Part shown: positions 4,787 through 63,605 of the stretch, piece by piece
Numbering within the stretch: the stretch's first letter is position 1
Layout of the letters: each line of letters begins with the position of its first letter
Assembly (NCBI RefSeq): GCF_020745735.1
Contig: NC_083407.1
Coordinates: forward strand, 89,023,857-89,087,856
DNA length: 64,000 bases
Direction: 5' to 3'
Source of the DNA: Hemiscyllium ocellatum
Lineage: Eukaryota
Notes under the pieces: generated by a model
Seen by the model: the letters and a program-made list of their open reading frames with translations, nothing else
Databases searched by the model: none
Told to the model about the DNA's origin: nothing
Made by a program: the position numbers and the translations under genes

Positions 4787-4939
4787 TGCAGATACTGGAG
4801 ATCAGAGCTGAAAATGTGTTGCTGGTTAAAGCACAGCAGGTTTCCTGATGAAGGGCTGTGGCCCGAAACATCGAATTTCCTGTTCCTTGGATGCTGCCTA
4901 ACCTGCTGTGCTTTAACCAGCAACACATTTTCAGCTCTG
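4787..4939. mobile_element. palindromic HHR mini-element
   Basis: About 40-bp perfect inverted arms (4803-4842 and 4900-4939) around the HHR TTCCTGATGAAGGGCTGTGGCCCGAAACATCGAA; abuts the assembly gap. Confidence 0.85.
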
Positions 4940-5384
4940 TATGTATGTATGTCCTGGCTAACTACCCAGTTAATTGCAATGTAGTCCTCTGGAGGCCTTA
5001 GTTCACAATAGGAAATCTTTCCACAGGGCTCTGTACACAGGCTAATGGCCCATTCAAAATTTTAAACTTCTCAAATTTTACTAACCAGAGTCCAGAAGAT
5101 CTGCCCATGCTTTCTGAACTAATAAGGAGCTCTGTACCATCGCAACTGAATGCACTTTGACAAATTCCAGGACAAGTTCTATTTGATACTGCCTCTAAAT
5201 GCAGGAGCACTGAAAGAAAAATGCTGAGATATACAGAATAGTTTATGGATAAATCAAAGATTCAACAATGCATATCGCCAGGATTAATTTTCTGAACAAA
5301 GGTTGAATAATAAGGAGGAAATTTTCACAGTGATTGTAGTGACAAGGATAACTTTGCTGCCAGAATGGGGCCTGAGGTTTTATA

Positions 5385-5605
5385 GTAAAAAGTGAGGTCT
5401 GCAGATGCTGGAGATCAGAGCTGAAAATGTGTTGCTGGTTAAAGCGCAGCAGGTCAGGCAGCATCCAAGGAACAGGAGATTCGACGTTTCGGGCTAAAGC
5501 CCTTCATCAGGAATATGATGAAGGGCTTTAGCCCGAAAAGTCAAATCTCCTGCTCCTTGGATGCTGCCTGACCTGCTGAGCTTTAACCAGCAAAACCTTT
5601 TCAGC
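5385..5605. mobile_element. head-to-head palindromic HHR mini-element
   Basis: Minus arm with an intact HHR; plus arm starts at TGATGA (5516); 14-bp TSD CCTGAGGTTTTATA at 5371-5384 and 5606-5619. Confidence 0.9.
5479..5514 (-). ncRNA. minimal type-I hammerhead ribozyme (intact)
   Basis: Minus strand ATTC-CTGATGA-A-GGGC-TTTA-GCCC-GAAAC-GTC-GAAT. Confidence 0.88.
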
Positions 5606-10636: not shown

Positions 10637-10726
10637 GCTGAAGAAGGGTTACACCCGAAAAGTCGACTTCTCCGCATCCTGATGCTGCCTGACTTGTTGT
10701 GTTCTTCCAGCCTCCTGCTTGTCTAA
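10637..10726 (+). mobile_element. PLE pLTR relic with degenerate HHR (CTGAAGA family), intron 2 of gene 1, antisense
   Basis: CTGAAGA-AGGGT-TAC-ACCC-GAAAAGTC-GAC plus tail; imperfect TSD about 10622-10636 and 10727-10741. Confidence 0.7.
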
Positions 10727-13700
10727 TTGTTAGACTCGAGGCAATTGTAAAGGGTAGATTTGTTGTAGTACAAGGCTGTAATTGTGGGAATATGAGTCAA
10801 CAGTACAGTTCACATCTGTCCCATGTGTTTATCGTTGGAATAATAATGGAAATGGAAATTTGGAGAGATTCAACGCAGTTTGTCAATATCATTCAATCTA
10901 AACCTGTGTGTTTCATGAGACATTCCATTGTGTGTCCTTGTTACAGACAACTACACTGGTTTTTAACGTTAATTTTTCCACGTAATCCTCAACAAATGGT
11001 CATAGAGATACAAAAGGCAATTGCATAAGATCTGCCACATGGCTGAAATATTAGTCAGCCTTCGTTTTAAGAAGATACTCAAAAGGTATAAAATTAGTGT
11101 CAGTTTGGCTTTGTGCAATATTGTAAAATATATCATAATGAATAATTTACGTCACTGCTTTTTATTGACTTCGATGCAAGTATAATTTGGAAGAAGTATT
11201 AAACAGATTTGTTATCAGTTCTATTATATTATTGCACAAAGAAAGATTCATCTTCACTGTCATTTGTTGAGTCAAAAAAGTTAGTGCAAATTGAATGATT
11301 TTCTAAGATGATTTATTTGGTATAACTCACTTCGAAAAAATAAACTGTTAATTTGAAATCTATCAAATGACTTGGAAATATAGTCGCTGTTTGTTTGGTG
11401 TTGCTCGGTCAAAATGTTAGAATTCCCTCCCTAACTGCACTATGGGTCGACCTACAGCTCATGGACTGCAATGCTTCAAGAAGACAGCTCACAAGGCCCA
11501 CATCCCAAGAATGAAAATGGAAACAGGACAAGAAAAAATATAGTGGAGAAGTTCACAAGTACATGATAGTTTTCCAATTTTCACCGTTGGTGAGTCGCTA
11601 AACTAGAAGATTAGTAGTTAGTAAGGAATTGCATTGAAATATGAACTAATGTCGAGTGGACAAATTGGACTGAAGAGTCTATATCTGCACTGTATAGCTC
11701 TATAACTCCACAAATGTCCTTCATCTAGAAAACCGGGCAAAGTTAGAGCATATATCTTTGACCGCACATTGTGCAACTTTTCCCTTTTTATCCAGTGACA
11801 AGAAGGGAAACTAATGGATGAGTAACCATTAGAGTTTCACCCTCTTCTAATCAGTTCACTGATTATGGGCTGAGCGAAAATATTCTCATCCCACCACCAG
11901 CTAAGGCTCTTATGCAGCCCATGAATGCTCACTTAAGAGTCCACTTTGCTACTTCTCTGATCACCCTGCCTCCTCAGCAGTTTCCCAACTGGGAAAGCAG
12001 GAAACTGCGAAGGTTGGTGCGAGTGCTCAAATTTCTCCAATCGTGGAGCAATCGGACTGGTAGATATGGAGGGCAAAGGATTGACCGCTAAAAGCCGCAT
12101 GTCTGCCTTTACCTCCAAAACCCTGACACCACCCCTTCCACTGCACACACCCTGAAAGAGGAGTATATAAATTCCATACCTCCGCACTGTTGGCTCCCCC
12201 AGGGAGGAGGCCTGAAGTGACGGACTTTAGAACCCCCAGTAGCTGCCAAATTCTGATTTGCTGACAGTGTTTGGCAGTGCCAAGTCCTGTGATTCTCTGA
12301 GAAGCTTGCCTAAACTCTTAATGAGCTGATTGAAGGTATTTTCTTGATGGTGGGTGTGACATATTGGTCACCACCTAACATCCTCACCCCATACTTCACA
12401 ACTGGGGAAATATTTGCCCACAGTTTTTAGAGCTTTGAATCCTTAACAACTGACTGACCCAATGGCAATGATAACATGATTGAACTGAACTAGAAGAAGA
12501 GTTTGAAAAGAAAGACTGATATGGATTGGGGAGTGGACAGGTGAATAGAAATAGATTTGATTGTATTCTTGTAAGAGCAGCAGCCAGCATCAAAAACAAA
12601 ATAGTTTATTTCTAGACAGTAACATTTATAATTCTATATACCAATCTCCAATCCACTAAGAATGTATAACTATTCAATTGCACATTCATCATTATGCTAT
12701 AAATGGCTTATGGCTAGATAAACCAGTAACACAGTGCAATGGGGATGCCTACACTGTCAGGTTACTGGGCACTGGAAAGTTAGAGACATCTAGATTAGCG
12801 ATAATGCTTAGCTGATGTAATAAACGAAATAAGGAATTGAGAATTTATCACTGCTTTTATAAGCTAATATTGAACAACATAGTTATATTTTCCAACATCA
12901 TTTGAAATCCCAAAAAAATCAAATACATCTAAGTTTATGTTGGCATTTTAGTTCCAATTTTGGCCAACTTTCTATATTATCAGCAGTTCACAATGTGTGT
13001 TTCAGAGTTCTGTTCCCTGTTCTCAAACACTGTTAACGCCCAGATACAAAGATTCAAGGTTTTCAAATTGACTGCAGTATTAGTGTTTTATTCAGATCTA
13101 CTGTAAATTACTGGTTAATGCATGCTTTTATTGTTCATAGTGAATATAATCAGCACTGGGAAATTAAAATGTTCCTGCTTTTTTCACATGAGGTCAGCAA
13201 CAAGCAATCCAAATTCAGAATATAGCATGTTAGATTTAGAGTAAAGCTCCCAGTGCAATATCCCTTCATGGTACCCTGGACCTAATGTTAGACAGACACC
13301 CTATCTTACATCAAGCATCAGTTTTTACATAGTTCACTTGGACTTGGTAAAAGTGACAGCCATTTAATAACCAAGTCCAAAATAGTGGGTTAGAGAAAAT
13401 AAACTATATTCTGGCTTTAAAACCAAATGGTACCCAGTCTGAGAGTGCTGATACTGACACTGTATGCCCAAAGTGAAAGGCTCATTCTGATATTTATTGC
13501 CTCATTGCAAAATTTGATGAAACTCTATCCTTTTAAAAATAATTTGCAGCAAAGGATCAAGCCATTCGGCCTAGCTGACCTATGCTGGTGTTTGCACCAT
13601 GAATGTTACCTCTTCTCACTATTTATCATTTTCCCTCCATCGTGAACCTATCTAGCATTTCCTGAAATCTACCTGTGCAATACTCTTCAATTATTCCCAG

Positions 13701-25158: not shown

Positions 25159-25263
25159 AGGAATGGAACGGGGTCCTGAAGAAGGGTTACACCCCAAACG
25201 TCGACTTCTGCACCTCCTGATTCTGCCTTGCTTGCTGTGTTCTTCCAGCCTCCTGCCAGTCTA
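25159..25263 (+). mobile_element. PLE pLTR relic with degenerate HHR (CTGAAGA family), intron 2 of gene 2, antisense
   Basis: GTC-CTGAAGA-AGGGT-TAC-ACCC-CAAAC-GTC-GAC at 25173-25205; TSD CTCAACATCA at 25145-25154 and 25264-25273. Confidence 0.75.
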
Positions 25264-27430: not shown

Positions 27431-27476
27431 ATGAAAAAAATGCAAAAGCCTGGAATGCAAAATGCATTAATGTTGA

Positions 27477-27712
27477 AAGTGAGGACTGCAGATGTTGGAG
27501 ATCAGAGCTGAAAAATGTGTTGCTGGAAAAGCGCAGCAGGTCAGGCAGCATCCAAGGAGCAGGAGAATCGACATTTCGGGCATAAGCCAGCAACATGTTT
27601 TTCTGCATTAATGTTGAGGTAATGATGAAGGGCTTATGCCCGAAACGTCGAATTTCCTGTTCCTTGGATGCTGCCTAACCTGCTGTGCTTTAACCAGCAA
27701 CACATTTTCAGC
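27477..27712. mobile_element. compound HHR mini-element(s) upstream of the gene 2 promoter
   Basis: Minus pLTR tail 27477-27603 and plus HHR plus tail 27623-27712, separated and flanked by three copies of TGCATTAATGTTGA. Confidence 0.88.
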
Positions 27713-27764
27713 TGCATTAATGTTGAGTCTAGTGAAGATATTACAGTTCAAATTGGGCACCACA

Positions 27765-31905: not shown

Positions 31906-32103
31906 GCTTGCTTTTTGACTGGGTGTATAAAGGCATTTTAAATGGAGTGCCCATGCTGGGAATTACATGATGTGCCAGTAGTGGCAATTATTTTGGTGTG
32001 CAGTGCATGGAAGAATAAGTAGAGCAGGTCACTGTTAAGGCATTGTCTGTCGTCAATGAGGATGATAGTGCAAGAAAACTTGCTAGGCCTTGTGGAAAGC
32101 GAG

Positions 32104-32755
32104 AGTTAAAAAGGGTGATGCTGGAAAAGCACAGCTGGTCAGGCAGCATCTGAGAGCAGGAGAGTCGACACTTCAGGCAAAAGCCCTTCATCAGGAATGG
32201 GGGGCGGGGGGTGAGGGGGTGTGGGGAAAGAGGGCTGGAGACAATAGGGGTTGGGGGAGAGGCTCGGGGAAAGATAGGTGGGAAGTTGAGAATTGGATGC
32301 CGGTGAAGATTAATTGTGATAGGTTGGTGGGGAGGATGGAGCGGATAAGTGGGAAGGAAGATGAACAGGTAGGACAGGTCAAGAGGATGATGTTGATATC
32401 TCCTGCCCCACGTCATTCCAGATCCAACCCTCCAACTCAGCACGGCCCTGTTGAACTGTTATACCTGTCCATCTTCCTCCCCACCTGTCTGCTCCACCCT
32501 CCCCACCGCCCTATCACAATTACCCCCCCCACCTTCATCTACATATCACATTGCCAGCTACCTTCTGCTCAGCCCCAACCCCACCCTCCTTTTTATCTCT
32601 CAGCCCCCTTCCCCCACCTGCCACATCCTGATGAAGGACTTATGCCCAAAACATCAACTCTTCTGCTCCTCAGACGCTGCCTGACCTGCTGTGCTTTTCC
32701 AGCGCCACACTTTTCAACTCTGACTCTCCAGCACCTGCAGTCCTCACTTCCTCCT
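32104..32755. mobile_element. head-to-head inverted PLE pLTR pair with two decayed HHRs
   Basis: Minus arm about 32104-32390, plus arm about 32400-32755; 17-bp imperfect TSD GCCYTGTGGAAAGYGAG at 32087-32103 and 32756-32772. Confidence 0.85.
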
Positions 32756-34229
32756 GCCCTGTGGAAAGTGAGCCTCAATGAAGTACGCATTGGCTCTGGG
32801 ACTCAGGACACTGCTGCTAAATTCAAGGCACATTTGCAACCCCATACAGATGATGAATCCTTGTTCTCAGCCATTAATGATTATGTCAGACTGCGAAGAC
32901 AGGCACAGGAACATCAGGAACAACAGAGGCATTTACACGAAATACAGAGGGGTTTACCAAATATTATCAGTAGAGTGTTGACTTCAGCTGGCATGGATCT
33001 GGCAGTCTGCATGGACAGGTTGGCAATCACCTGGGAAAGCCAAGTCGAGCGCACTCAGTGTTTGTCGAATATGTTACGTAGAGGACATTGTCAAAGAGCT
33101 GCTCTCCATTAGTCAGGCCATAGTCACTCAACATCACTGCTAAGTTGGGAGTGGGACTGTGAACTTCAGTCTCACTCCAGATGCCCCTTTTTTCTCATGG
33201 TAGTGCTGACAGAGTGGGGGAGGAGTGATACACAGGTTCCCCCAGTGCTTCTTTTCAGGACACTCTGCCAAGTGCTACCTTTAGTGCCACCTCAACCCTC
33301 CCTGTGGTCTCAAAGCCTGCAGCACTTCAAACAAAGGAGAGTGAGCCTGCATCTAGGTAGGTGACTCTCAGCAGAATCGGGCTGTCTAGGCCCAGAGGCA
33401 CCGGGAGCCACGACTGCCCAAATCTACCAATCCAACAGGGTCAACCACAGTGCATGTTCCCTCCACCCTAGTGCAGATGTCAGAGCTGCACTTAGACATA
33501 GTAAGAGGGCGAAGATGGAAAAAGGACACTGAGGGCACGAAGGTGGCATGTCAAAATATCAAAATATCAGGATTCTTGCACATGAAGGACTGCTGCCAAG
33601 TCATTGTAATTTAATAAATATATCACTTAAATTATGTGCTATAGGCAGAAATGGACCAGATTCACACATTATTCCACATCTTATGAGTGAGAGTACTGAG
33701 GATTCGACATATCTTTGTTTATTCTGTTTATCATTCAGTAAAATTCAGTGCTCCCTCATAATATATTGTCTGCCAACACAAAGTGTTGCCTCTCACAGGT
33801 TCATAGTTGCTGCAAAAGCATTCTACGTGCACTCTAAAGCAATGAAGTACCCTTGATTATGGTCAAAAGGAGATAGATAAGGATTTCCCTCAACCTGCTG
33901 GCTAACCTGAGAGAGTTCACTTAAAGCCATGTGATTGCACTGTCTGCCTTTCCCCTAATGGTCATTGAGATATGATGTCTGCGCATATATTAAATTAGGA
34001 TCATCCAAAGAAGTCAAGCATTCAATGACATGAATAAAAAGACATTTACTCAATAACACAAAAGGTCAAGGACTGCAAAAACGGGAAGGTCCATATGACC
34101 TTTAAGTCTGTTTTCCAAATTAAGAGAATGTTAAACAATTAAACAAAGTCCAAGCCCAGTCTTTCATCTTCACTAATGTTCTTTCTGCCTGTTGAATTTG
34201 ATAATGCATGTCTCTTATTGTCCTCCTTG

Positions 34230-43399: not shown

Positions 43400-45230
43400 G
43401 GACTGAGTTGGTTTCTATTCCTTCACAATGTAGTGTCATGATCACTTATGGTCCGGGGCTGGTTGCATTTTCATAGACTTTTGCTGGTATCGGTGTAATT
43501 GTATTTATAAATCATACTCTCTGCCCAGTGCTCTGTTTTGGTAGGTTTCTAACTGCTCATTCATGTCGATCCCTTTTGTTCTTGTCTGTCTAAAAAGAAG
43601 AATGTCCTGTATCTTGGAATAGTTAGACAATTTGTTGCTGGGAAAAGTAATTTGCACTTGTCATATGAACATAAATTGTCCTGAAATCGAAATTTCTTAT
43701 TTTGGTATTGCACAAAATGAAGCAAGGCAGTACAAAGAGCTTGTTGCTCCACACTTAATATTTGTTGATTTCATTGTTCACACCATCAAACATTCTGCTA
43801 AACAGTTTGAGTCTGGTTAGTGAAGTGACAGTCTGCTATGGGTCAATCCCCACAGTACAAATGTCCTGAGATGGTTTGCCAGTGAAGTATGGTTTGTTTT
43901 TATTCACTATCTGATCTAGGACATCGAATAAACTGAAAATAAAACTTATCATGTCAGTGATGGTCCCGCTCAGTGTGATGCTAAGTCTCTGAACAGCAGG
44001 GAGTTTAGAAATGTAATCTATCACAAGGATGCAATCTTCTCAGTGTACTGTGAAAAGGTCTGTTGCTGCCTTCATCCAAGGAGTGAATGGAACATTGTGT
44101 GAATGTAGAGGCTCCCTCTAGTGGGATTGATACATCTGGCATGCCTCAACTGCATTCATGAGGCATTAATATTCGGATATATCCCAAGGCAGAATCACAT
44201 GCCAGCTGCCTTGTGAGTTTCAATGCTAATATGCCTCTGGTCTCACATCAAAATGATATCATGGTGTTATGTTTATGGTATTTGGACTTGCTTTTCCCAA
44301 AATGTGCCTTGTCCTGATTTACCAAGTTGATCTCTGGCCAAGATGAGCAAAACGTCTCAGATTCTTCTTGAATAGTGTCAGCCCATTCCTGGACATTATT
44401 TTTCTTGCAACTCTTGTAGTTGCTTATCTTCAGCAGTAGCCAATAGCATTTGCTCTGGCCAAAGTGTAATGGAGCAATTTTGAGAAAATCCTTAACTTGT
44501 ATAATCTTGAACCGCATTGTGTAAGTCAAGAGGTATATCCTGGTCTGTGTGTGGGTTGGGTAATCTGATCATCTTGGTGCTTCTGAAGTAATCATCCTTG
44601 TGCCTGACTTAAATCTCACTTGAAAGTTATATTTTTTGAGACCATTGATGGATTTAGTTGTGCCACATGTAGTCTGTTCTGCCACAAAGGGCACAGTTAA
44701 ATCTCATGAATCGTAACTATACCGAGACTTGTGCATACTAGTAATCCCATCACTGCTTGTGTATTAACATCACCAGGTAGAAGATTCTGGGAAGCCATAA
44801 TTTTGCTAATGCACAGAAATGGTGATTCATTGTACACTCTGAGACAGTGTCTCCCAAGTGTACCACTTGGTGAGATACATACATTTTCTGAGTGCACAGT
44901 AGTAATAAATTGGCAGTAACTCCAATGTTGGTTTTGGCTTTTATTGTATGTTGTTGTGCCTTTCTCAGCAAATGATCATAACGTATATAAAAGCTCCTGA
45001 TTGCCTAATGCTGTTGACATGGTTATAAGGTGAATAACATAAAAAGCTTGGGCATTGTTTGAAATTTGATTTTCACTTGCTTTTGATTCTGAACTTCATT
45101 GATGTATTTGTGTGCATTTGTATACCATCTTTACACTTGCCTTGCAGCCAGTGTTGTACCAACTTATCAACTGTGTATTGTTCTGGAATCTGGCCTAGCC
45201 TTTGGAATTAGATTTTCTGCACATGTATGC
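43400..45230 (-). mobile_element. degenerate LTR-retrotransposon (Gypsy-like) pol/integrase relic
   Basis: Translations FSLFDVLDQIVNKNKPYF (cf. FG.P..IVSDNGPQF) and WPEI resemble integrase; heavily decayed. Confidence 0.4.
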
Positions 45231-45896
45231 CTTATCTCCCTCAGTGCCATACATTTTACGGATATCAAGAAAAGTTGAATAATCATTTATACATAAGATA
45301 TAATGGATCTCTTACATATTATATAGGTTTTATGACCATATCAGTCGTGTTAATTATATCCAAAACATCTAATTGTTGTGAATTTGATGCTATGGCTTCC
45401 TATTTTTATCAATCCTTAATTAATTCATCACACTGAGAAGATAATGCAAATAGATTTAGCTGGTGTAAATTTGATGACTTAACATAATGAGCTTCTCCAG
45501 GAGTGTCACTTCTGGAAAGTAACACTCATGCTCTTTACTGTGGACAGTCCGCATCCATGAACACCAACTAGCCATGAAACGACATGACCAGCTATTCTTA
45601 GTAGCCACACACACAGATGACAAGCAACATGAGTTCGACTGGGACAACACTACTATTACAGGACAAGTCAAACAGAGAACAGCCAGGGAATTCCTAGAGG
45701 CATGGCACTCATCCACAAATTCAATCAATAAGCACATCGACCTGGACCCAATATACCCGCCACTGCAGCAGACAGCTGGAACTGACAACCGGAAGCAGCA
45801 GAGACATACCATTTTAAATGCTGGAGGAAACATCACAGAAGCGCTTCACAGGAGGGTCCCAAGCACTGAGGATGTCACCTAGACAGGGGATGAAAC

Positions 45897-47864
45897 CGAC
45901 TCAACCTGTCCACCCCTCTCACCCACTCCAACCTCTCACCCTCAGAACGTGCAGCCCTCCACTCCCTCCGCTCCAATCCCAACCTCACCATCAAACCCGC
46001 AGACAAGGGAGGCGCGGTGGTAGTTTGGCGCACTGACCTGTACACCGCTGAAGCCAAACGCCAGCTCGCGGACGCCTCCTCTTATCGCCCCCTTGACCAC
46101 GACCCCACCTCCCACCACCAAACCATCATCTCCCAGACCATCCAGGACCTCATCACCTCAGGGGATCTCCCATCCACCGCCTCCAACCTCATAGTCCCAC
46201 AACCCCGCACCGCCCGTTTCTACCTCCTGCCCAAAATCCACAAACCTGCCTGCCCCGGCCGACCCATTGTCTCAGCCTGCTCCTGCCCCACCGAACTCAT
46301 CTCCCAATACCTCGACACGGTCCTGTCCCCTTTAGTCCAAGAACTCCCCACCTACGTTCGGGACACCACCCACGCCCTCCACCTCCTCCAGGATTTTCGC
46401 TTCCCCGGTCCCCAACGCCTTATTTTCACTATGGACATCCAGTCCCTGTACACCTCCATCCCCCATCACGAAGGACTCAAAGCCCTCCGCTTCTTCCTTT
46501 CCCGCCGCACTAACCAGTACCCTTCCACTGACACCCTCCTTCGACTGACTGAACTGGTCCTCACCCTGAATAACTTCTCTTTTCAATCCTCCCACTTCCT
46601 CCAAACTAAAGGAGTTGCCATGGGCACCCGCATGGGCCCCAGCTATGCCTGCCTCTTCGTAGGATATGTGGAACAGTCCATCTTCCGCAACTACACTGGC
46701 ACCACCCCCCACCTTTTCCTCCGCTACATCGATGACTGTATCGGCGCTGCCTCGTGCTCCCACGAGGAGGTTGAACAGTTCATCAACTTTACTAACACCT
46801 TCCATCCCGACCTGAAATTCACCTGGACTGTCTCAGACTCCTCCCTCCCCTTCCTAGACCTTTCCATTTCTATCTCGGGCGACCGACTCAACACAGACAT
46901 CTATTATAAACCGACTGACTCCCACAGCTACCTGGACTACACCTCCTCCCACCCTGCCCCCTGTAAAAACGCCATCCCATATTCCCAATTCCTTCGTCTC
47001 CGCCGCATCTGCTCCCAGGAGGACCAATTCCAACACCGCACAACCCAGATGGCCTCCTTCTTCAAGGACCGCAGATTCCCCCCAGACGTGATCGACGATG
47101 CCCTCCACCGCATCTCCTCCACTTCCCGCTCCTCCGCCCTTGAGCCCCGCTCCTCCAACCGCCACCAAGACAGAACCCCACTGGTTCTCACCTACCACCC
47201 CACCAACCTGCGCATACAACGTATTATCCGCCGCCATTTCCGCCACCTCCAAACGGACCCCACCACCAAGGATATATTTCCCTCCCCTCCCCTATCAGCG
47301 TTCCGCAAGGACCACTCCCTTCGTGACTCCCTTGTCAGATCCACACCCCCCACCAACCCAACCTCCACCCCCGGCACCTTCCCCTGCAACCGCAGGAAAT
47401 GTAAAACTTGCGCCCACACCTCCACACTCACTTCCCTCCAAGGCCCCAAGGGATCCTTCCATATCCGCCACAAGTTCACCTGTACCTCCACACACATCAT
47501 CTATTGCATCCGCTGCACCCGATGTGGCCTCCTCTATATTGGTGAGACAGGCCGCTTACTTGCGGAACGCTTCAGAGAACACCTCTGGGCCGCCCGAACC
47601 AACCAACCCAATCACCCCGTGGCTCAACACTTTAACTCCCCCTCCCACTCCACCGAGGACATGCAGGTCCTTGGACTCCTCCACCGGCAGAACACAACTA
47701 CACGACGGCTGGAGGAGGAGCGCCTCATCTTCCGCCTGGGAACCCTCCAACCACAAGGTATGAATTCAGATTTCTCCAGCTTCCTCATTTCCCCTCCCCC
47801 CACCTTGTCTCAGTCGGTTCCCTCAACTCAGCACCGCCCTCCTAACCTGCAATCCTCTTCCTGA
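45897..47864 (+). CDS. PLE reverse transcriptase + GIY-YIG endonuclease (5'-truncated open frame, no native ATG)
   Basis: Frame open from 45897 (RLNLSTP...IKPADKGGAVVV); motifs KIHK..PGRPI, GVAMG, RYIDD, FLD, Cys linker CNRRKCKTC, IYCIRC..CGLLYIGETGR..RFREH. Confidence 0.92.
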   Translation, partial: RLNLSTPLTHSNLSPSERAALHSLRSNPNLTIKPADKGGAVVVWRTDLYTAEAKRQLADASSYRPLDHDPTSHHQTIISQTIQDLITSGDLPSTASNLIVPQPRTARFYLLPKIHKPACPGRPIVSACSCPTELISQYLDTVLSPLVQELPTYVRDTTHALHLLQDFRFPGPQRLIFTMDIQSLYTSIPHHEGLKALRFFLSRRTNQYPSTDTLLRLTELVLTLNNFSFQSSHFLQTKGVAMGTRMGPSYACLFVGYVEQSIFRNYTGTTPHLFLRYIDDCIGAASCSHEEVEQFINFTNTFHPDLKFTWTVSDSSLPFLDLSISISGDRLNTDIYYKPTDSHSYLDYTSSHPAPCKNAIPYSQFLRLRRICSQEDQFQHRTTQMASFFKDRRFPPDVIDDALHRISSTSRSSALEPRSSNRHQDRTPLVLTYHPTNLRIQRIIRRHFRHLQTDPTTKDIFPSPPLSAFRKDHSLRDSLVRSTPPTNPTSTPGTFPCNRRKCKTCAHTSTLTSLQGPKGSFHIRHKFTCTSTHIIYCIRCTRCGLLYIGETGRLLAERFREHLWAARTNQPNHPVAQHFNSPSHSTEDMQVLGLLHRQNTTTRRLEEERLIFRLGTLQPQGMNSDFSSFLISPPPTLSQSVPSTQHRPPNLQSSS

Positions 47865-47997
47865 CCTCTCCGCCCCCACCCCACTCCGGCCTATCACCCT
47901 CACCTTGACCTCCTTCCACCTATCCCACCTCCATCGCCCCTCCCCCTAGTCCCTCCTCCCTACCTTTTATCTCAGCCTGCTTGGCTCTCTCTCTCTT

Positions 47998-48033
47998 ATT
48001 CCTGATGAAGGGCTTATGCTCGAAACGTCGAAT
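47998..48033 (+). ncRNA. minimal type-I hammerhead ribozyme (intact)
   Basis: ATTC-CTGATGA-A-GGGC-TTAT-GCTC-GAAAC-GTC-GAAT: stem I ATTC/GAAT, core CUGAUGA/GAAA, palindromic ACGT stem III, GUC cleavage triplet ending at 48029. Confidence 0.9.
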
Positions 48034-48963
48034 TCTCTATTCCTGAGATGCTGCCTAACCTGCTGTGCTTTGACCAGCAACACATTTGCAGCTGTGATCT
48101 CCAGCATCTGCAGACCTCATTTTTTACTCGGGGATGAAACGTCTGCAACACAAATTCCCAGCTTGGCGAACACAACCACAACATCTTTACTGTGGAATTC
48201 TGGTAAACTGGTCAGTAAACTCTTGGAGGTTGCTGTCTGTACAATGTGAGTTGGAGTCTGTTATGTATGAAGCTAATTTTTACAGATCTTTCCTGGATTT
48301 TTCTAATTGTCCATGAAAAGACCAAATGTGTTACTCCTATGAAAATCCTCCTTTCCAATGGAAAATAAGATTATTAAAGGTCTTTTCTCAAGATTATCTA
48401 TGGTTTGGTCTGTAAGGTATAATTGCAAATGTTGCTTGGCCACAGAATTCGATGAGGGTGTCATCAGATGCTGAATCTATAATGAGGTTTCAGCTTTCCA
48501 TGATTCCAATTAAAAGTGTTGCGTGTACCACCTTAACGTGCATGCCCCTAATTATGTATTAATTTAAGTTAGAAGGTGCCCCTTCCTTAATAATAAAGAC
48601 CTTGCAGGTTTGAAAAAAAATTAATTGCATCTTAATCAAAAGTAAATTACTTCTGTTTGTTTTGGTGGTAAATGGACTACCTAAGATCTGTCCCGGCTGA
48701 CTGTATTGACAGAAACTGATGCCTCCTATGGCTAAGGAATTTACCCTTCATCCAAATTATGTGTTGTCCAGTTGGTTTACAATTAATTTTCCTAATATCT
48801 TCTACTATCATTAACATTAGTGTGTTTGCCTCCAATAGGATATTTTAATTTATGCCGCAATGTTAATATTATTTCTTAAAGCATAAGAAAGTGCGTATGG
48901 ATATTATGGCATTGATTATTCCAGGAGATAATTACTACAGCTAGCTATTATGTGCAAAGATTG

Positions 48964-55369: not shown

Positions 55370-56950
55370 GCCATTCCTTTATTCATGTCAGTAGATGCCC
55401 CTGACATCATGGGCTCTTGTCTTATTTAGCAGCAGTGTTGCATCTTGTCAAAGAACTCCTGGAAATCCAAATAGATTATGTCCACTAGTTCTCATTTGTC
55501 TAACTTGCTCATTACTTCCGTAAAGAATTCTAACAGATTTATCGGGCATAATCCCCACTTGATGAAGTTGTGCTGACTCAGCCCTATTTTACCATGTACT
55601 TTCAAGTACACCACAATCTCAACCTGACAATAGACTCTAAAATCTTATCAATGACCAAGGTCAGGCTAACTGGCTTATAGTTTCCTGTCTTCTGTCCTCT
55701 TTCCCTTCTTAAACAGGGGTGTTACACATTATGCAGTCCTTTTGGACCCTCCCTGACCCCTGTGATTCCTGAAAGATCATCACCAATGTCTCTACAACCT
55801 CTTTCTGAACTCTAGAGTGTAGTTCATCTGGTTGAGGTGATTTCAGACCTTACAGCTTCCCCAGCACCTCCTTAGTGACAAAAATAGAAATTGCTGGAAA
55901 AGCTCAGCAGGTCTGGCAGCATCTGTGGAGAGAGATCAAAGTTAACGTTTTGGGTTGAGTGACCCTTCTTCAGAACTTCTTCAGAACTTGCCCTCATATT
56001 TCATCTTCTTGCCCCTTATTGCTTGTTAGTTGTCCTCTGCTGGTATTTAAAGGCTTCCCATTAATCATCACTACATATATGCTTTTGTTTTTGCTTTTAC
56101 ACTTCCCAATTTCCCTTCTCAGCTATGGTTGCCTTGTCTTCCCCTTAGTATGTTTCTTCTTCCCTGGAATGAATTTCTGCAGTGTTTCCCGAATTACCCT
56201 CAGAAACTCCTACCATTGCTACTCCACTGTCTTCCCTTTCAATCGACTCTGGCCAGCTCCTCCCTCATGTCTTTGTGGTTGCTGTTACTCAACTGTAATA
56301 CCATGACACTTGATTCCAGATTCTGCCTCTCAAACTGCAGGGTGAATACTATCATGTAATGGTCACCGCCCCCTGGGAGTTCCTTCACCTTCAGCTCCCT
56401 AATCAGGTCTACCTTATCATGGATCACCAAATCCAGATTTGTTCCCTAGTGGACGAACCACATGCTGCTCTAAAAAAAAATCTCCTGGTATTTCATGAAT
56501 TCCTTTTCTCAAGATCCACTACCAATCTGGTTTTCCCAGTCCGCCTACATATTGAAGTCCTCCATGATTATTGTAATAGTACCTTTTTTACGTGTATTTT
56601 GTGTTTCCCAAATTATTTTCTGTTCCACATCCTGACTACTGCTAGGAAACTTGTACATAGCTCTCATTAAAGTCTTTTCGGCCTTTACGGTTCCTCAACT
56701 GACTCTACATCCCCCAATGTTATGTCACTTCTCGCTATTGATTTAAATTCATTTCTTACCAACAAGGCAAGCTTACCCTCTCTGTTTGTCTGCCTGTCCT
56801 TTCAATAAAACATGTATCCTTGGGTATTTAGGTTCCAGCCCTAATCCCTTTGCAGCAATGTCTCTGTGACGCCCGCAACATCGTACCCACCGATTTCAAT
56901 CTGCGCTACAAGCTCATTTACCTTGGTTCATATACTGTGCACGCATTTAA
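55370..56950 (-). mobile_element. CR1 LINE relic (endonuclease/RT parts, deleted)
   Basis: DLIRELKVKELPGGGDHYMIVF; NYKPVSLT; DFQEFFDK. Confidence 0.7.
55877..55989 (-). mobile_element. PLE pLTR relic with HHR (AGTT/AACT stem I family)
   Basis: Minus strand AGTT-CTGAAGA-AGGGTC-ACTC-AACCC-AAAAC-GTT-AACT at 55940-55977. Confidence 0.7.
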
Positions 56951-63447: not shown

Positions 63448-63605
63448 AAAAACAAAGAGTTCCAGATACTGGAAATCTAAAACAAAAACAAAAATTGCTG
63501 GAAAAATTCAGCAGATCTGGCAGGATCAGTGGAGAGAAAGCAGAGTTAATGTTTTGGGTCCAGTGTCTCTTCTGCTGAGCTTTACCAGTAATTTTTAGTT
63601 TTTAA
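63448..63605. mobile_element. palindromic pLTR relic, same family as 55877
   Basis: Minus tail up to HHR stem II (AGTTAATGTTTTGGGTCCAGTG) followed by an inverted tail CTGCTGAGCTTTACCAGTAATTTTT. Confidence 0.65.

Follow-up and report, generated by a model that had tools for sequence, protein, structure and literature searches.

Does a retroelement that lies within the ribozyme motif of another retroelement owe its position to chance, or to a preference for such DNA? This question is raised by a locus in a stretch of 64,000 nucleotides from the genome of the shark Hemiscyllium ocellatum (contig NC_083407.1, positions 89,023,857 to 89,087,856 of the forward strand), the whole of which (64 kb) is referred to below as the window. 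At this locus one Penelope-like element (PLE) is inserted into the hammerhead ribozyme (HHR)-like motif of a second PLE, the host, and a preliminary description of this DNA had considered both chance and HHR-directed targeting as explanations. Our analyses indicate that the locus was probably formed by two ordinary successive PLE retrotranspositions, the second of which landed in the first by chance.

The locus is delimited by an outer and an inner pair of direct repeats, each representing a target-site duplication (TSD), and these enclose the parts of the two elements as follows:

45532–45544, unstranded: left copy of the outer TSD, 13 bp, TCTTTACTGTGGA
45545–45896, forward strand: left part of the host PLE, a 5′-truncated 3′ fragment that appears Penelope/Poseidon-like
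45886–45896, unstranded: left copy of the inner duplication, 11 bp, GGGGATGAAAC, the final AAC of which (45894–45896) is also inner-element sequence
45897–48129, forward strand: inner PLE, probably of Neptune/Nematis type, 2233 bp, 5′-truncated, lying between the inner repeats
48130–48140, unstranded: right copy of the inner duplication, 11 bp, GGGGATGAAAC
48141–48183, forward strand: right part of the host PLE, consisting of GUC (48141–48143), the helix I strand UGC (48144–48146) and a 37-nt element end
48184–48196, unstranded: right copy of the outer TSD, 13 bp, TCTTTACTGTGGA, with ATT directly after it

Exact-word searches located both copies of each duplication and found TCTTTACTGTGGA and GGGGATGAAAC twice only in the window; together with reading of the sequence they confirmed the outer element with its 13-bp TSD, the inner PLE and all of the coordinates that had been assigned to them. 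The host fragment totals 395 bp and is split by the inner PLE.

Logan contigs from four runs of four organisms (designated A to D) were placed on positions 45200–48500. The joined form, in which 45885 is followed by 48130 with 11 shared letters, is present in all of them (11, 14, 6, and 3 contigs in the four runs), and the consensus of the loose ends after 45896 is GTCTGCAACAC..., which is canonical host-family sequence and the same as the right host part. The canonical host family is continuous through GAAAC-GTC. Joining of 45896 to 48141 yields GCA-CTGAGGA-(19 nt)-GAAAC-GTC-TGC, so that removal of the insert would, as previously proposed, restore the host HHR motif, at the level of the motif. 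The empty site, which had been suggested as a check in related species, is also present: a 2267-nt contig of organism C (X10 record 9), the flanks of which are ~5% diverged from the window, joins 45531 to 48184 and represents a precise empty site that retains one TSD copy and lacks both elements together. In organism B, contigs break inside the TSD at either end of the locus, and an empty site could account for this pattern too. In organism A, one contig (X1 record 1) runs from unique DNA across the 5′ junction into the host. Both families are very abundant in organisms A–C, their contig depth per bin summing to between 10^5 and almost 10^7, as against 5–50 for unique flanking DNA. At 8 or more of 395 positions the host copy departs from the majority of its family, and the inner copy departs from organism D contigs at 4 of ~760 positions, a difference in divergence that is consistent with the host being the older of the two. 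Over 497 bp (45894–46390) the inner copy shares 99.4% identity with a contig of high depth from organism D, an organism for which unique flanks were not recovered; organism D may be a close relative sequenced at low coverage, or the family may be shared and have been active very recently.

The exact 11-bp repeat had been described as the TSD of the inner element. The repeat itself is confirmed, but its full length does not represent the TSD, because the final AAC is shared with the element. In a contig of organism D (X14 record 18) the inner family carries on beyond 45894 in the 5′ direction, where the sequence reads ...GACATC-AAC-CGACTC and stays in frame (..HRDINRLNLS..), and the alignment of a full-length relative (P0009) to the inner PLE starts at 45894. 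The AAC common to the inner PLE and its target reads as a 3-nt microhomology at the 5′ junction. Since these letters belong to both the element and the target, the true inner TSD is 8–11 bp and the position of the top-strand break is ambiguous by 3 nt. The insertion lies within the HHR motif, as had been stated, but the break is not placeable exactly at GAAAC|GTC, and the placement of the element exactly between GAAAC and GUC is thus not retained. Hammerhead self-cleavage occurs 3′ of GUC, which is 3 nt downstream, and the junction therefore bears no special relation to the RNA cleavage site.

The inner PLE is the more complete of the two elements, and the features recognized within it are the following:

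45897–47864, forward strand: open reading frame (ORF) of 655 codons, open from the first base of the element
about 46260–46796, forward strand: reverse transcriptase (RT) domain, with YIDD at 46725
47385–47411, forward strand: CX4CX2C linker, CNRRKCKTC, residues 497–505, ahead of the GIY-YIG domain
from 47496, forward strand: GIY-YIG domain, IIY...YIGETG...R..EH
48093–48129, forward strand: ‘tail’ of 37 nt, this copy ending at the long one of the two 3′ ends of the family

The ORF matches the Pfam model RVT_1 (E = 1.4e-8; 35.2 bits, above the curated cut-off of 29.6), and its match to the Pfam GIY-YIG model, which covers the N-terminal part only, falls just below the cut-off of 22.6 (E = 2.2e-4; 21.9 bits). 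RT and GIY-YIG are thus present in one open frame, which is the arrangement characteristic of endonuclease-positive (EN+) PLEs. A full-length relative of 924 amino acids (P0009) aligns from its residue 289, indicating that the 5′ truncation removed ~288 codons and the 5′ untranslated region. The protein has 2706 homologues at E ≤ 1e-30, the closest of which (87–68% identical) are from the orectolobiform sharks Chiloscyllium punctatum, Rhincodon typus, and Stegostoma tigrinum. A CX2-5CxxC linker characterizes the Neptune and Nematis PLEs (Craig et al., 2021, PMC8557442), and based upon this motif and the best hits, assignment of the inner PLE to Neptune/Nematis, the two not being separated, is reasonable; the designation as Neptune-type in the preliminary description agrees with this. 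Copies of the inner family in the window stop either at the equivalent of 48092 or ~37 nt further (~48129), and an optional PLE tail of 30–40 nt has been described (PMC8557442, PMC11167929). The inner family hence displays the insertion signature of PLEs, viz. the optional tail, two RT initiation sites and TSDs of variable length.

The host, in contrast to the inner PLE, had to be identified through its relatives. Its open frame (45547–45882, stop codon at 45880–45882) begins ..RIHEH.. and corresponds to the C-terminal half of a GIY-YIG endonuclease, and its 102-amino acid peptide gave no Pfam match. A phmmer search of this peptide against 1.8 billion representatives recovered 320 relatives, and the peptide aligns to the C-terminal 60–100 residues of RVT_1-bearing proteins (P0220, P0222, and P0170), in which RVT_1 lies upstream. 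In P0126 the Pfam GIY-YIG match (E = 2.7e-4; 21.6 bits, cut-off 22.6) stops where the stretch matched by the host starts, and P0121, which is 86% identical to the host, carries the endonuclease motifs VVY...YIRQTG...R..EH upstream, with no CX2-5CxxC linker upstream of them. The full-length relatives thus place GIY-YIG C-terminal to RT, as is required of a PLE, and other host-family copies extend upstream of 45544 in the contigs. Because its relatives carry RVT_1 and a GIY-YIG context without the linker, the host is identified as a Penelope/Poseidon-like PLE, of which this copy reads as a truncated 3′ end. RT identity between the host family and the inner family is only 30% and their tails have no sequence similarity; together with the domain content of the relatives, this bears out the earlier statement that two different PLE families, each with its own TSD, are involved.

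Both elements carry sequences resembling the minimal hammerheads (min-HHRs) of PLEs, which are located as follows:

45863–45896, forward strand: 5′ three quarters of the putative host min-HHR, comprising GCA (45863–45865), CUGAGGA (45866–45872), an extra U and helix II (45873–45891), and GAAAC (45892–45896)
48002–48029, forward strand: predicted min-HHR of the inner PLE itself, CUGAUGA-A-GGGC-UUAU-GCUC-GAAAC-GUC, with helix I AUUC/GAAU

The reconstructed host motif contains the conserved core C3 U4 G5 A6 N7 G8 A9, G12 A13 A14, A15.1-U16.1, and H17, and it has the min-HHR trait of an extra U after CUGAGGA, with 15.2-16.2 being C-G within ACGU. It departs from the conserved G10.1-C11.1 pair in that helix II is closed by G.U; this helix, GUC(A)CCU/GGGGAU, comprises 6 bp with a bulged A, and helix I just 3 bp. 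In one paralogous contig a C:G pair of helix II has become U:A, a double change that is compensatory. The motif of the inner PLE fits the published min-HHR traits fully, including the extra A and a helix II closed by G-C (PMC4209133). The Rfam hammerhead models gave no match in the whole window at their gathering thresholds, nor in 45400–48400 at E ≤ 10. This result is expected, because metazoan PLE ribozymes are min-HHRs that lack helix III, which these models do not capture, and it does not count against the motif. When the reconstructed host motif was folded thermodynamically, as a monomer or as a dimer, no hammerhead fold was returned, as is expected for minimal motifs, and this outcome was used neither for nor against it. 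We accept the host motif, as judged from its sequence, as HHR-like and of the PLE type. The helix III-less min-HHRs of metazoan PLEs are reported to be weak in cleavage and to act as dimers only (Cervera and de la Pena, 2014, PMC4209133); on its own, a motif of this dimer type, such as that of the host, would not be expected to cleave. The host copy is a dead fragment that has no RT, promoter or partner ribozyme, and it hence has no processing function to lose. The suggestion that the insertion knocked out or hijacked the processing signal of a competitor is for this reason not upheld, since a 395-bp fragment with a solitary dimer-type HHR has nothing to process.

The frequency with which such an insertion is expected can be gauged from the PLE content of the window. 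Its 14 PLE insertion events account for 10–13% of the bases, and it has 17 HHR-like motifs, which belong to three or more tail families. For an 11-bp TSD, the chance of overlapping any HHR motif is 1.0% and that of overlapping a GAAAC-GUC octamer 0.5%, and the chance of a nick exactly at GAAAC|GUC is 0.05%. Extrapolated to 1539 windows of this genome, the part already scanned, at ~14 events each, this corresponds to ~20,000 insertions, with on the order of 100 octamer overlaps and several at the exact position. That one of the 14 events is nested is in line with a PLE coverage of 10%. Nine target sites could be reconstructed in the window, a small sample that consists of that of the inner element, that of the host and seven others not produced by the family of the host (TSDs GTCTAACTATAAGAG, CTACCCTCAG, CCTGAGGTTTTATA, AGACTTGAGG, CTCAACATCACCTG, TGCATTAATGTTGA, and TGTGGAAAG). 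The TSDs at the eight sites other than that of the inner element (these seven and TCTTTACTGTGGA of the host) are unrelated, and no common sequence was found at either nick. Only the site of the inner element touches an HHR, so that within the window the pattern is not that of an HHR-targeting retroelement, and none of 12 other tail ends in the window adjoins an HHR core. The caution urged earlier, on the grounds that other TSDs in the window show no GAAAC preference, is therefore justified. An insertion into a hammerhead is expected by chance in a genome this rich in PLEs, and the tests run within the window gave no sign of targeting.

Two ordinary retrotranspositions would explain the locus as follows. 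After the split from the related organism C, a Penelope/Poseidon-like element would have entered AT-rich DNA, undergone heavy 5′ truncation to 395 bp and generated the 13-bp TSD. Later, the ribonucleoprotein (RNP) of the very abundant Neptune/Nematis-type family would have nicked the host fragment with a stagger of 8–11 bp; reverse transcription, primed on the bottom-strand 3′-OH at the long ‘tail’ initiation site, would have copied 2.2 kb, and the end of the complementary DNA would have been joined to the top strand via the 3-nt AAC microhomology. The site would simply have happened to be the GAAAC part of the host min-HHR, with nothing gained or lost. We infer the order of the two events, the order in which the strands were nicked and the random choice of the site. 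Two observations weigh against this account. No host-only state of the locus was seen in the contigs of the four organisms. In addition, the absence of HHR cores at the 12 tail ends bounds the frequency of targeting only below ~22%, and a moderate bias is thus compatible with it.

The first of these observations is the one that favors a single-event composite, in which a source copy of the host family already contained the inner element, and the 3′-terminal 2.6 kb of that copy were transcribed and retrotransposed as one piece, the 11-bp duplication being inherited. The sole empty site seen lacks both elements together, and it is known that introns and foreign sequence can travel with PLEs (PMC8557442). 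No contig with the host-to-inner junction was found among the listed pieces of any run, which are a minority of the pieces. A search across runs with the 61-nt 3′ junction, which covered two sampled words, listed none and is not counted for or against the composite. The host part looks more diverged from the majority of its family than the inner part from its own, a truncated host RNA with a 2.2-kb foreign insert would be a rarer template than the RNAs of the plain families, and this explanation merely shifts the same chance insertion to another locus. We consider it unlikely.

The second observation leaves room for directed insertion, in which the Neptune-type RNP or its GIY-YIG endonuclease would prefer DNA that encodes a pseudo-long terminal repeat (pLTR) or a hammerhead, e.g., through the ACGT palindrome or the GAAAC context. 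One nick may fall at the center of the HHR ACGT palindrome, the right nick A|GTCT is common to two of the nine sites, and the 14-bp target TGCATTAATGTTGA is duplicated twice in succession (27462–27728), which is a hint of a site preference. According to published work, fragments of PLEs are recognized by PLE endonucleases, which may also nick the pLTR of their own element; tandem arrays are presumed to arise in this way (PMC11167929). These points are offset by the other eight target sites and 12 tail ends, which lie outside HHR cores and share no motif, by the 3-nt ambiguity of the nick due to the AAC microhomology, by the lack of sequence similarity between the host and inner tails, and by the hundred or so such overlaps predicted by chance across 1539 windows. 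The published work further reports that insertion is unchanged in HHR mutants and that the PLE endonuclease prefers AT-rich DNA such as ATT (PMC11167929). The host insertion site fits this preference, with flanks of 33–34% GC and ATT right after the TSD, whereas the inner insertion site is G-rich and falls outside it. Pairing between RNA and DNA at the core GAAACGTC, which had been proposed because both elements share it, would place the inner HHR at the junction; one junction of the inner PLE falls in the N-terminal region of its RT and the other at the end of its tail, 100 nt downstream of its own HHR, and pairing of the two cores is therefore not involved. HHR-directed targeting is thus not supported by the unrelated target sites of the window, by a 5′ junction that resembles ordinary microhomology joining or by the high chance expectation, and it is in our judgement decidedly unlikely. 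A real but partial preference of the Neptune-type RNP for the pLTR or hammerhead DNA of other families, i.e., a cross-family ‘homing’ akin to self-targeting, is very unlikely.

An assembly artefact, in which two high-copy repeats were mis-joined, is scarcely credible: both families are of very high copy number and no listed contig spans the internal junctions, but a mis-join would neither place exact 11-bp repeats around an element that has a complete 3′ end and the canonical tail of its family nor leave the host perfectly continuous after removal of the insert, and a contig of organism A also carries the boundary between unique DNA and the 5′ end of the host. Template switching between two RNAs in one reverse transcription was rejected, as it would not duplicate 11 bp of host sequence on both sides. 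Chance insertion in the course of a second ordinary retrotransposition thus remains the explanation that we favor.

Other PLE insertions in the window provide further information on these families. At 27462–27728 the sequence TGCATTAATGTTGA occurs three times, in the order TSD, inverted long-tail arm with a 16-nt forward stub, TSD, forward arm starting from inside the CUGAUGA box, and TSD; this may reflect either two successive insertions at identical nicks or one complex event that duplicated the target twice. Tiny fold-back (inverted-arm) insertions of PLE tails with their own TSDs (e.g., CCTGAGGTTTTATA and TGTGGAAAG) are found at 4787–4939, 5384–5605, 32093–32762, and 63482–63602, and in these the two arms have different ends, the short site in one and the long ‘tail’ site in the other, as in the published inverted/tail architecture of PLEs. 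The 5′ truncation or fold-back points of mini-PLEs at 4842, 5516, 10638, 27623, and 39828, as well as loose ends before 48130, are situated at the 5′ edge of the CUGANGA box and not at the GUC cleavage site, in many cases and in at least three families including that of the host, which suggests that the structured ribozyme region is a frequent stopping or turning point for RT. Min-HHRs of the CUGAAGA type mark a second tail family, present at 10638–10735, 25160–25263, 55850–56010, and 63482–63602; shortly after the ribozyme, this family and the first both contain a conserved block, GATGCTGCCTGAC.TGCTG..CTTT, which may be a protein-binding or RT-initiation module. In a single case (4940–4954) a tail copy adjoins a (TATG)n microsatellite. 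A bias toward insertion into microsatellites is proposed for Neptune-type PLEs.

The arrangement can be compared with several known systems. It resembles nested insertions produced by target-primed reverse transcription, such as those of 5′-truncated long interspersed nuclear elements (LINEs), in having a short TSD from staggered nicks, a 5′ truncation, a 3-nt microhomology and an older repeat as the insertion site; it differs from LINEs in that a GIY-YIG endonuclease and a telomerase-like RT are involved, and the 3′ end is the internal ‘tail’ initiation site of a PLE rather than poly(A). Canonical EN+ PLEs are reportedly described by Arkhipova in 2006. Like them, the present elements belong to families that encode RT and, C-terminal to it, GIY-YIG in one ORF, with the CX2-5CxxC linker in the inner PLE, and both have an HHR motif in the 3′/pLTR region; the optional tail, TSDs of variable length and fold-back/inverted arms are further features seen in the window (PMC8557442). 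Unlike canonical EN+ PLEs, both of the copies described here are truncated and have no pLTR, and the clade of the inner PLE is assigned from its linker and best hits rather than from a tree. In comparison with the min-HHRs described previously (PMC4209133), the host motif, which is known from sequence alone, has G.U in place of G10.1-C11.1, a bulged A in its 6-bp helix II and a helix I of 3 bp. The insertion of a PLE into the 3′ untranslated part of a PLE is also shared with PLE self-targeting into tandem arrays and pLTRs (Frangieh et al., 2024, PMC11167929); here, however, the families are different (30% RT identity and unrelated tails), the site is G-rich and the product is neither tandem nor a pLTR. 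The nested insertion is an already known kind of event, which is routine in a PLE-saturated shark genome. Self-targeting that builds tandem arrays and pLTRs is also said to have been reported by Pyatkov et al. in 2004.

The choice of target by PLEs is poorly understood, and cross-family targeting of ribozyme DNA, if true, would constitute a new form of competition between transposons; if even a partial preference were true, PLE lineages would systematically disrupt, or piggy-back on, the 3′ processing regions of one another. What this locus provides is a clean and phylogenetically anchored example of PLE integration, which combines an empty site, TSDs of 13 bp and 8–11 bp, a start at the long ‘tail’ site and microhomology at the truncated junction.

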